Origin: Stylophora pistillata
Taxonomy: Eukaryota
Assembly (NCBI RefSeq): GCF_002571385.2
Contig: NW_019217845.1
Location: forward strand, 1-64,000
DNA length: 64,000 bases
Direction of reading: 5' to 3'
Position numbers and translations under genes: made by a program. The notes beneath the pieces are model-generated. The model was given only the letters and a program-made list of their open reading frames with translations, ran no database searches and was not told where the DNA came from. Shown here piece after piece: positions 39,401 to 42,400 of this stretch (positions are counted from its first letter, which is position 1; every line of letters starts with the position of its first letter).

Positions 39401-42400
39401 GGTGACCGTGGGGAGATTCAGATCTCCACCTCCCCTCCTTTCTGACAACAATGATTTTGTAATAAATTCTCCTTTGATACTCTGAAGATTACATTTCTTT
39501 TAGTTTTTAACTCGTCTTCGTTACACAACCTCCAGCCCACCATTTTTAAAACGGCTGAAAACGCAACTTTGATTTCACTTTTGAGTCGTCATCTGCCAAC
39601 CGGATTATCTGATATTAGTATCATTTCAGAGCTGAGCAAAGAGTTTCAAGCAATCTGATTGGTCGAGCGGTTCCTTTATGATGCTATATAAACCGCTCCA
39701 CGCGGTTTATCTAAAATGTTAAAATAAAATGTTAATAATTGTTACTAAAATGTTATGATTTTAGAAATTTCTCTGTTGTTCAGCACTGAAATTATACTAA
39801 AACAATTATTCGCCTCAGGTTCGGTGAATATTGTCGAATAATCCCCTCGACTTCTTCTCGGGGATTATTCGACGATATTCACCTCGCCTCCGGCGAATAA
39901 TTGTTAATTATAGGGGAGAATAAACTTGCGCGGAGAATACCGATGTTGAAGTAAAGAAATGATCCGACCCGGTGCTCTGCAATTAAAGACATTGTAGATG
40001 AGAAGTGCGAAAAATTTTGACTTCGATCCTGTGTCTTCCAGATGCCAGCCAACTTCACCAACAACTGCGAAGCTGCATGTAGGGAGCCTGGCAAACGTCC
40101 CAGAAATTTTATTATAATTACTTTAACAACGTAGGGAAAAAGTACCACGTAAAAGTTATTTTCAAAAGCTTTCCTTTGACTAGTCAGAGAAGACAACCTC
40201 ACAAAAAGTAGGATTCGTGGAAAAATGTTCGCACACTTCAAAACACTTATTAACCCACAACACTGATGCTAAGAAGCTTAAGTTACTCGAGATGTAGGAA
40301 ATTTAATATCGCGTTACCAAGCTACACTGATCACCCGTAATTTATTTATCATTTGCAGTCTGAAAGAGATACTCCTTCAAAGATATGCAAGGTCTTTTGA
40401 GGTCATTTGCGTTGTAAATTAACTGATAAAGAGTTCGAATGGTAACGATTAATTTCTCACAAATTCAGTTAACCCAAACATCATTCTCCCCCACTCCTTG
40501 AAAATGACCTTTTTTTGTAAAGAAACAAAAGTGTCCTTGCAATATTCAGTAAAGTCGCATCTTCTGCATAGTCTCGCCCAGACTTGTCGACTGAAGAATT
40601 TCCTCTAAATCCTTCTGATTTTTCTTGTCAACCTGTTTCCTTTTTGCTATCCAGTCATCTTTGGCTGCGAAACCTCGGTCGATCATCAATAGCTGCAGCC
40701 AGTCGTAATCTGACAGAGCCTTTAGTTGAACTCCTTTCTCCACCAACTTTCTCAAACCGATGGCATTATCCTCTGCGACCTTCTGCACGCGGACGTGAAT
40801 ATTATGTAGATGGGCGAAGCGAATCGACACGCTTACACTCTCGTTTTGCGCGAGCCACTCGCAGATCTTCTCCGAGCATTCTCCGCACGGCGAAAAATTG
40901 CTAAGAAGCTGGAAATCGTGTAGGAAGCCCGTTAATGGATGTTCTTCGAGTTGCACAATCGACTGCTTGAACGCGTGGATCGATCCGCTCCTGTAAACCT
41001 TTCGTGACAAGATCTTTCCATCTCTTCCTCTAGCTACGGCAAGCACGACAGCCTCTGACGGCCAAAAACCGCCTGGCACGCCAGACTTAAGAACAGCTGT
41101 CAAGTCGAAGTCTTCTGGAGTGGGGCTCTGAGGTACTGTTGCGGAATTAGCCGCCATGCTGACAAAAGTGAAAGTTAAATTATAAGTTCAAATTGATTTG
41201 TAATTCCGGTTGGTTAAATTCTCGAGACTGGTAATTTTATATGACGCTGCCTATCACTTGACATGACAGTAGGCCTCTTAGGTCAGTAAACAGTCGTTAT
41301 TTTAAGTATCTCCAGTTTTCATTTAAAAAGACGAGTTACTGTAGTGTAATTCCCAGGTATGTTCTGGTATCGATCTGGGGAGCTTATGTTGCCCCCAGTG
41401 ACTCAAGTTACGGTGGACGAAAACTTCATCAGAGATAGATCGGTGAACACTAATAAGGAAGTGAAAGAAATCTTTTGACGCTGAAAAATCAGTCATGCCA
41501 TCCAAACGTAACAAAACATTTGTACGATGAGCGGAATGTTTTTATGAGACTGAAAAATTACAACAATGAAAAAATATATTAAACTCTTTGTCAACACTTT
41601 TCTGCAGATTTTGAATTATTTTTTTTCCGTAGGCTTATTGACTCTGAAGTGAAACTTCAAGTTCATATTTGTGCACACTAACTTGTGTTTACTTTGGCTG
41701 CGTTTTTTATTCGTCATAAGACGCCTCATTTTGCTTTAAATTGAGCGTCAAAAAGAGTTAAGAGTTTTTTTGCGTCTGGTTTTCTTCGTGCACAGTGTCC
41801 CGTTTACATACGCGTTCTAACTTTTTCTCAAGGCCCGACCAAACGCACGAAACATTTCAACGTAACATCTTGTACCATGGTTAGTTCATGTTGTGGGATA
41901 ATGTGAAGGAAGCAGAGCTAATAATAAAGGGAAGCTCAGAAGCTAGGCCGGGTCTTAAAAAGTTAATTACCGTTTGACCAAACGTGTATTTGTGCCATAA
42001 ACAATCCGATTGCTTATGAAAGTCGCGCAGTCAAACATATAGTGAACAATCAGGAGGGCATGTTGTATTTCATCCAAGCAGAAGGAAAACCAAAACTGAT
42101 CGTGATTTGACCCATGAGAGTTTTTCCCGCGCCTGGCCTTAACTGGTTGCACTGATGTTTTCCCGGGGCCCCCCCCCCCCCCTACATAAGCCCTCAACGC
42201 AACACCCCCCACACAAACGGCCCCATCCCTCACAAACTGCGCCCCCCTCCCTCACAAGCTGCTCCCACCGCATAAGCTGCATATTTTCGCGCGGTTACCG
42301 CGGCCAAATTCCTCTTAGTAACCCGGTCCTGGTTTCGGTTAGATCCTTTTTCGTCTAGTTATAATCAATTTAATCCGTTCTTGTGTTTGTAGTTTAAGTT

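Follow-up and report, generated by a model that had tools for sequence, protein, structure and literature searches.

A conserved, putatively inactive AID/APOBEC deaminase encoded within an intron of a RAD54-family helicase gene in the coral Stylophora pistillata

Background

Several proteins with a deaminase fold are known to function without deaminating. ADAT3 (Tad3), the non-catalytic subunit of the ADAT2-ADAT3 tRNA adenosine deaminase, is a deaminase-fold paralogue in which the catalytic glutamate is replaced by a hydrophobic residue and which forms an obligate, experimentally demonstrated heterodimer with its active paralogue. The N-terminal domains of APOBEC3G, APOBEC3F and APOBEC3B combine the fold of the AID/APOBEC deaminases (AADs) with a lack of deamination and contribute to binding and oligomerisation next to an active domain; in APOBEC3G, this inactive domain binds nucleic acid. 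The vertebrate proteins APOBEC4 and APOBEC2 are slow-evolving AADs for which no deaminase activity has been demonstrated. Outside the vertebrates, AID/APOBEC deaminases are known almost only from sequence surveys, and inactive copies have been regarded as curiosities. Stand-alone AADs predicted to be inactive have been described in Ciona intestinalis and, within a metal-binding clade, in Evechinus chloroticus, and were proposed to be decoys or non-mutating nucleic-acid binders (Krishnan et al. 2018; PMC5889660). The main text of that study mentions no inactive AAD from a coral or any other cnidarian. The present analysis concerns an AAD-like gene on the reverse strand, at positions 40546-41157, of a 64,000-nucleotide stretch of the genome of the stony coral Stylophora pistillata (positions 1 to 64,000 of contig NW_019217845.1, assembly GCF_002571385.2; hereafter the window), which an initial annotation, made from the sequence alone, had taken to encode a selected pseudo-enzyme hidden antisense within a recombination gene.

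The coral protein differs from each of these systems. While the inactive proteins of Ciona and Evechinus belong to other lineages and clades, inactivity here defines a whole slow-evolving and apparently single-copy group that is found in both stony coral lineages, and in which the zinc site decays too. The APOBEC3 N-terminal domains retain the HxE motif and every zinc ligand, are joined in cis to their active partner and evolve rapidly under viral pressure, whereas the coral AAD is encoded by a separate gene, has lost the glutamate and evolves slowly. ADAT3 belongs to the Tad/ADAT family, which acts on A34 of tRNA, and keeps its zinc ligands, while the pairing of the coral protein with an active paralogue is a putative one, suggested by a single complex prediction. 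APOBEC4 and APOBEC2 keep both the HxE and PCxxC motifs, and the loop-1 insert of the APOBEC4/cnidaria-algae clade is absent from the coral protein. A literature search found no paper on an inactive AAD from a coral or other cnidarian. Inactive AADs are already known as a kind, of which the coral orthologue group is a new and unusually well-conserved member.

Results and discussion

An AID/APOBEC-fold protein without the catalytic glutamate

The AAD open reading frame (ORF) is uninterrupted and comprises 203 codons followed by a TGA stop codon (40546-40548), and the coordinates and residues of the initial annotation proved exact. Nine AID/APOBEC Pfam models match the protein at E <= 2e-4 (best 1.2e-25), with PF18775 'APOBEC4' as the top local model (89.9 bits), and a sequence search retrieves solved chains of APOBEC3G/3F, APOBEC1 and AID. 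An AlphaFold2 model built with 26 homologues has a mean pLDDT of 74.8, rising to 86-93 over residues 61-110, which hold both active-site motifs. The order of its elements (a1-b1-b2-a2-b3-a3-b4-a4-b5-a5-a6) is that of a canonical APOBEC, with the H61-A62-F63 motif (HAF) opening helix a2 and the PCxxC motif opening helix a3, so F63 truly occupies the position of the catalytic glutamate. Foldseek comparison of this model with the PDB returns 113 matches at E <= 0.001, the top ones listed being APOBEC3F, 3C, 3G and 3H, AID and APOBEC1; structures of APOBEC3 N-terminal domains (5k81-5k83 and 5tkm) are among the top structural matches. By both profile and topology, the protein is a member of the AID/APOBEC superfamily, and the deaminase fold that had been expected of it is borne out.

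All three zinc ligands of the deaminases, H61, C91 and C94, are present in the S. pistillata protein. The glutamate that acts as proton shuttle in competent zinc-dependent cytidine deaminases is absent, F63 standing in its place. The HAF motif is encoded by CAC (H61; 40975-40977), GCG (A62) and TTC (F63; 40969-40971), together 40969-40977 on the reverse strand, and a direct reading of the codons confirms that TTC differs from both GAA and GAG at all three positions. The zinc-ligand motif P90-C91-G-E-C94 (40876-40890, reverse strand) follows N87-F88-S89, and C99 is the only other cysteine of the protein. R56-S57 are found where AID has R-N, and H116-L117-H118 also occur as described. The N-F-S-P-C sequence, which had been counted among the altered pocket residues, is no sign of decay, since the catalytically intact paralogues of the same genome carry N-Y-S-P-C and N-F/Y-S-P-C is the family norm. 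The protein has a pI of 7.7, with 26 lysine and arginine against 25 aspartate and glutamate residues. Its disordered N-terminal tail contains a nearly invariant S-P-x-P..F motif (residues 11-14 and 17; 41110-41124), in which S11, P12, P14 and F17 are kept in at least 90% of orthologues and which, judging from this pattern, could serve for docking or for phosphorylation by proline-directed kinases.

Orthology with APOBEC4 was considered on account of the top Pfam match and rejected. The PF18775 model is short (74 positions) and matches every AAD tested, including the other AADs of the S. pistillata genome and unrelated ones, so that the 'APOBEC4' label is not diagnostic. The defining feature of the APOBEC4/cnidaria-algae clade is a long insert in loop 1 that chelates metal through two cysteines and a histidine, together with a cysteine in loop 3 (PMC5889660), while loop 1 of the coral protein is a short G-V-P-G-G-F-W-P without cysteine or histidine. 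The family names differ between Pfam releases and are not comparable across tools: the local models are named PF18775 'APOBEC4', PF18782 'NAD2' and PF08210 'APOBEC_N', and the newer annotations use PF18785 'Inv-AAD', PF18782 'APOBEC3' and PF08210 'AID'. A genome search with the local PF18785.7 (Inv-AAD) model gave no match, while precomputed annotations from newer Pfam releases assign the same proteins to PF18785. A Protein Atlas search returned generic APOBEC-like clusters only, and an Rfam scan of 38500-42600 found no match to a non-coding RNA.

Loss of the catalytic glutamate across stony corals

A homologue search of 5.8 billion proteins yielded 26 clusters of full-length homologues with 46-100% identity to the AAD protein. 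The named orthologues come from Desmophyllum pertusum, Oculina patagonica, Porites lutea and Porites harrisoni, and all are annotated as 'hypothetical' or 'uncharacterized'. Porites, Oculina and Desmophyllum together span both deep lineages of stony corals, Robusta and Complexa. The glutamate of the HxE motif is kept in just two of the 26 orthologues, and its replacement is aromatic in all 24 others (tyrosine in 20, phenylalanine in four). The histidine of the motif is kept in 15 of the 26 (otherwise asparagine, aspartate, alanine or leucine), the first cysteine in 20 (otherwise serine) and the second in 22 (otherwise glycine or serine). The zinc ligands noted at first are thus a feature of the S. 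pistillata protein but not a conserved property of its group. As for the HxF state, whose conservation had been put forward for checking, the loss of the glutamate is shared by 24 of the 26 orthologues, and phenylalanine itself is confined to four.

Only the two most distant orthologues, P0025 and P0026, retain the glutamate. P0026 has HTE and an intact PCxxC, and P0025 (locus L017:10001-10807) has HAE with serine in place of the first zinc-binding cysteine (P-S-G-E-C), a combination that makes it a possible intermediate in which metal binding was weakened before the glutamate was lost. The called ORF of P0025 also carries a 65-residue N-terminal extension, which is probably read-through by the gene caller. 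In a maximum-likelihood tree of 66 sequences, the orthologues form a clade with 97% SH-aLRT support in which the HxE-bearing P0025 and P0026 branch first, and the 11 sampled dead sequences form a crown with 96% SH-aLRT support and very short branches. The closest relative of the protein in the window, at 90% identity, has tyrosine at the glutamate position, so the phenylalanine of S. pistillata represents a recent step from tyrosine. When 1.84 billion cluster representatives were searched with a profile, only four clusters scored at E < 1e-30, followed by a large gap in score, and nearly all of the remoter relatives have a canonical HxE...PCxxC, indicating that the dead state is peculiar to one orthologue group. 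As judged from these sequences, the replacement of the glutamate by an aromatic residue is placed on the stem of the crown stony corals, tyrosine having come first and phenylalanine later, in the lineage of S. pistillata.

Purifying selection on a protein that has lost its chemistry

Ratios of non-synonymous to synonymous substitution rates (dN/dS) were calculated pairwise with the Nei-Gojobori method for eight coding sequences taken from genomic loci, and the many pairs with saturated dS are not quoted. The ratios are 0.05-0.18 for the whole protein, 0.08-0.29 for residues 1-108 and 0.02-0.10 for residues 109-203, and some of the pairs behind these low ranges consist of two dead proteins. Residues 109-199 (b4, loop 7, a4, b5, a5 and a6; 40561-40833, reverse strand) form the most conserved part of the protein. 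Mean identity within the dead clade reaches 1.00 in a5, 0.99 in the a5-a6 linker, 0.97 in a6, 0.96 in loop 5, 0.95 in both loop 1 and loop 7 and 0.94 in b4, and is lowest, at 0.72, in loop 3 and helix a2, the former catalytic helix. The greatest conservation of C-terminal elements and the least conservation of the catalytic helix are the signature of a pseudo-enzyme kept for a non-chemical role, and the slow evolution of the orthologues is unlike that of AADs engaged in arms races.

Loss of catalytic residues, intact ORFs in the orthologues, dN/dS well below 1 and transcription are all found together in this group, and the AAD protein is with high confidence a selected pseudo-enzyme, as had been proposed: the glutamate is lost in 24 of the 26 orthologues, purifying selection is strong, the gene is expressed and the fold is that of a deaminase. 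Neutral evolution, a silent gene and orthologues all bearing HxE had been named in advance as findings that would speak against this proposal, and the opposite was found on all three counts. The sequence evidence describes a conserved pseudo-deaminase that would be unable to deaminate by the mechanism of its family, given that the proton shuttle is missing and the zinc ligands appear to be dispensable.

A discrete unspliced transcript

Contigs assembled from four polyA RNA-seq runs of three studies were placed on positions 37500-43400. Each run contains an unspliced contig over the AAD ORF (39891-41533, 40135-41526, 40192-41466 and 40085-41061, this last one accompanied by another at 41032-41492), and in three of the four runs its depth exceeds that of the contigs of the host mRNA (63.8 vs 25.9, 35.9 vs 12.9 and 17.8 vs 7.3-16.9). 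The intron stretch 41637-42424 has zero cover in the same four runs and so provides a silent control for carried-over DNA and for pre-mRNA. Four Logan contigs encoding the identical protein are likewise collinear with the genome and jointly extend from 41526 down to 39860. The AAD ORF is a transcribed single-exon gene with a discrete, unspliced polyA transcript of approximate extent 40085-41533; its assignment to the reverse strand follows from the ORF, because the contigs give no strand.

The 3' end of the transcript lies near 40074-40135. The expected polyadenylation signal is present twice on the reverse strand, as a proximal AATAAA at 40341-40346 and a distal one at 40108-40113, and contigs end at 40085 and 40074, 23-34 nt downstream of the latter. 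At the other end, most contigs start at 41466-41533 and one Logan contig starts at about 41207, 28-34 nt downstream of a TATAAAA box (41235-41241, reverse strand). The 50-nt leader from 41207 contains no upstream ATG, and the longer leader from 41533 contains six. The splice acceptor that had been proposed just before the ATG corresponds to a ttttgtcag tract 1 nt upstream of it, and splicing there was rejected, as the RNA contigs run collinearly through the tract and no joint occurs in the four RNA runs or the four Logan contigs.

A variant in one RNA run (X6), T>C at 40967, changes AAG to AGG on the reverse strand and results in K64R beside the former catalytic position. Arginine at position 64 is also found in one orthologue, codon 63 is without variant in the RNA runs, and the change is probably a strain polymorphism. 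Very deep cover at 39470-40060 was not accepted as part of the AAD gene, as it stems from a repeat of approximately 300 bp (39615-39912) whose candidate copies in the genome number well over a thousand and are 94-97% identical. The repeat contains an internal inverted segment of approximately 105 bp, suggestive of a fold-back or MITE-like element, and is sometimes arranged in tandem. The polyA RNA contigs covering it have summed depths of thousands, and in some runs the assembly of the AAD 3' untranslated region is interrupted by it.

Catalytically intact paralogues and a predicted dimer

At least ten further AAD-like open frames are present in the S. pistillata genome, six on contig C280, two on C2856 and one each on C2855 and C420 (loci L002-L008; C280:365769-414675, C2856:3108-4160, C2855:1977-2366 and C420:211468-211953). 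The two on C2856 are tandem deaminase domains within one frame of 408 amino acids, both with HAE and PCxxC, and all seven paralogous domains read have HAE or HVE together with PCxxC and N-Y-S-P-C. One of the six frames on C280 contains an in-frame TAG. Several paralogue frames are without a start methionine and open after an acceptor-like tract, making an upstream exon probable. The paralogues share with the AAD protein a G-V-x-G-x-x-W-P loop 1, the N-[YF]-S-P-C sequence and a C-terminal helix motif ending in L-x-E-[VI]-L, at 24-33% identity. They differ from it in keeping the catalytic motifs and in being clustered, duplicated and long-branched, with a clade of their own (98% support). The orthologue clade stands beside but outside this active clade, the deeper nodes of the tree being weakly supported; the stand-alone AAD protein probably belongs to the classical invertebrate AADs, which comprise proteins of cnidarians, lophotrochozoans, echinoderms and tunicates. 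From their sequences, the catalytically intact AADs are a lineage-specific expansion.

A complex prediction for the AAD protein with one of these active paralogues (C280, 411068-411568) gave a score of 0.68, against 0.01 for the best control, and so passes a mark that 51 of 78 solved complexes, but two of 108 mismatched pairs, attain. The runs share at least 65% of their contacts, and the pLDDT of the partner is at least 76. The predicted interface is pseudo-symmetric and is formed by b4/loop 7, a4, b5, a5 and a6 of each chain, 37 of the 42 interface residues of the AAD protein falling within residues 109-199. Invariant positions make up 83% of the interface residues, compared with 35% of the remaining folded ones (Mann-Whitney p = 2e-7), and the enrichment persists within the C-terminal half alone (p = 4e-4). 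The modelling supports a protein-protein interface on the invariant a4/b5/a5/a6 face.

The dead AAD protein would work by binding rather than by chemistry, and is probably a binding partner and not an editor of DNA or RNA. Its most likely mode of action would be protein-protein association through the invariant a4/b5/a5/a6 face, by which it may dimerise either with itself or with a catalytically intact AAD paralogue of the same genome; such dimerisation could modulate, target or titrate the active paralogues, the protein then acting as a non-catalytic subunit in trans, in the manner of ADAT3 with ADAT2 or of the inactive N-terminal half of double-domain APOBEC3 proteins. As an explanation of the whole, a conserved pseudo-deaminase that acts by binding, likeliest through dimerisation of the AAD type, accounts best for the data and is held to be slightly better than an even prospect. 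For function through AAD-family dimerisation taken by itself, the prospect is somewhat poorer than even, and a heterodimer with an active paralogue in particular is a tentative and rather unlikely proposal. The suggestion in the initial annotation that the protein regulates active paralogues thus gains in silico support, from the existence of intact paralogues and from a prediction that runs through the most conserved face.

Several points weigh against dimerisation as the mode of action. A pass in the complex prediction expresses the confidence of the model and says nothing on binding in cells; close relatives of a true partner pass as well; homodimer and heterodimer are not separable by it; and solved APOBEC dimers are present in the PDB, so that the prediction may partly reflect memory. 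The active paralogues evolve rapidly and differ in number from species to species, which is hard to square with an invariant face for a partner, and the conservation of loops 1, 5 and 7 would be just as compatible with a nucleic-acid binding that has been kept. The RNA contigs, for their part, provide neither strand nor expression level nor exact transcript ends.

Nucleic-acid binding as the main rival

The principal rival is a non-catalytic nucleic-acid binder, acting as reader, sensor or decoy, in which loops 1, 5 and 7 would grip single-stranded RNA or DNA and the aromatic residue at the glutamate position would fill or reshape the cytosine pocket. Such a protein would sequester or mark nucleic acid without needing an AAD partner, although this role is compatible with dimerisation. 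In its favour, the three loops are conserved at 0.95-0.96 while the catalytic helix is conserved least, the replacement of the glutamate is tyrosine or phenylalanine in 24 of 24 cases, a conserved basic run (K172-R173-K174) is found in a6, and the N-terminal domain of APOBEC3G (PDB 5k83) is among the fold matches. The near-zero net charge (pI 7.7) is, however, unlike that of the strongly basic RNA-binding AADs, and the polar residues that recognise cytosine, the glutamate and the asparagine of R-N, are gone. Parts of loops 7, 1 and 5 also lie within the predicted protein interface, so that their conservation is explicable without nucleic acid. Nucleic-acid binding is consequently regarded as possible but clearly less probable than the dimerisation of the pseudo-deaminase.

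Nesting within a RAD54-family host gene

The AAD gene lies within a gene on the forward strand whose mRNA has the GT..AG joints 37690>37844, 37929>38670, 38781>42490 and 42620>43061. The third of these, seen in three runs, skips 3.7 kb including the whole AAD ORF and defines an intron at 38784-42491 (cut +2), which is flanked upstream by exon B (38670-38783) and downstream by exon C (42492-42620), both delimited by spliced RNA contigs. Exon C encodes ...ALVMPRP... just before the helicase core. Exon-by-exon searches give SNF2 and Helicase_C Pfam matches to exons further downstream, and zebrafish Rad54 (1z3i) is the best PDB match for two host exons, which identifies the host as a RAD54-family helicase at the level of the family; its motifs may favour RAD54B over RAD54L. 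With its contigs wholly inside the spliced-out intron, the AAD transcription unit is an antisense gene nested within a single host intron, as had been recognised. A rare GT..AG joint on the forward strand, 38781>41032, joins the end of the host exon to a cryptic acceptor that lies within the AAD coding sequence of the other strand. It occurs in one run at depth 4, with 28 letters on its short side, and may represent either a minor isoform of the host or an artefact of assembly.

The arrangement is old. An AAD ORF on the opposite strand is located between homologues of both flanking host exons in at least four other coral assemblies (L015, L016, L017 and L019), and as the nested ORF of L017 encodes an HAE-bearing protein, nesting predates the loss of the glutamate. 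In two further assemblies, the upstream exon of the host lies at a distance of over 10 kb, beyond the stretch examined. In the window, the AAD gene is followed tail-to-head on its own strand by an EP400/domino-type SNF2 gene (14160-35776, reverse strand), and this gene order is conserved in several coral assemblies (loci L013, L015 and L016), including that of Desmophyllum pertusum. As this neighbour is equally syntenic, the nesting forms part of a general conserved microsynteny, and its ancient and conserved position in the RAD54-family intron is most simply explained in this way, without a functional link.

A functional coupling to the host, either as regulation of the RAD54-family gene by transcriptional interference or antisense pairing, or through a protein acting in recombination or repair, could be suggested by the retention of the nested position in four other coral assemblies, the deep-branching HAE-bearing one among them, and by the rare joint with its acceptor inside the antisense coding sequence. 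It is considered improbable in view of the equal synteny of the EP400/domino neighbour, the distance of over 10 kb to the upstream exon in two assemblies and the strong purifying selection at the protein level, which implies that the protein is selected and not merely the act of transcription. The protein has no sequence or domain link to recombination, and beyond the conserved position nothing was seen that ties AAD function to the host gene.

Residual catalysis and decay as unlikely alternatives

That the protein is still an enzyme, deaminating with another acid/base residue or performing new chemistry in the old pocket, might be argued from the three intact zinc ligands in S. pistillata and the strict conservation of tyrosine or phenylalanine at the glutamate position. 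The same purifying selection acts, however, on orthologues without the histidine (11 of 26), the first cysteine (6 of 26) or the second (4 of 26), which excludes zinc-dependent chemistry as the function that is conserved; the catalytic helix is also the least constrained element and phenylalanine offers no functional group. An enzymatic role is accordingly judged very improbable. A decaying pseudogene or chance intronic ORF, which the loss of catalytic and metal-binding residues might suggest, can be dismissed in the face of an intact ORF of approximately 200 codons across 26 orthologue clusters, dN/dS of 0.05-0.18 with dS up to saturation and a discrete polyA+ transcript.

Conclusions

The finding of a conserved pseudo-deaminase gene nested in a RAD54-family intron adds to the annotation of coral genomes. 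The C-terminal half of the protein has stayed nearly unchanged across both stony coral lineages long after the chemistry was lost and while even the zinc site eroded, which makes it a clean natural case for the use of the APOBEC fold without deamination. The protein is also a candidate regulator or partner of the active coral AADs, which are thought to have antiviral or anti-transposon roles. At its most speculative, and with a low probability that falls just below that of the specific heterodimer, the complex model may point to a two-component AID/APOBEC system of stony corals, in which an ancient dead subunit would pair through the a4/b5/a5/a6 face with fast-evolving, expanded active paralogues. 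If true, the dead subunit would have been fixed before the split of Complexa and Robusta and would control the activity, localisation or target choice of the paralogues, and the system would be the equivalent, in an invertebrate and acting in trans, of the paired inactive and active domains of mammalian APOBEC3 proteins, or of ADAT3-ADAT2.

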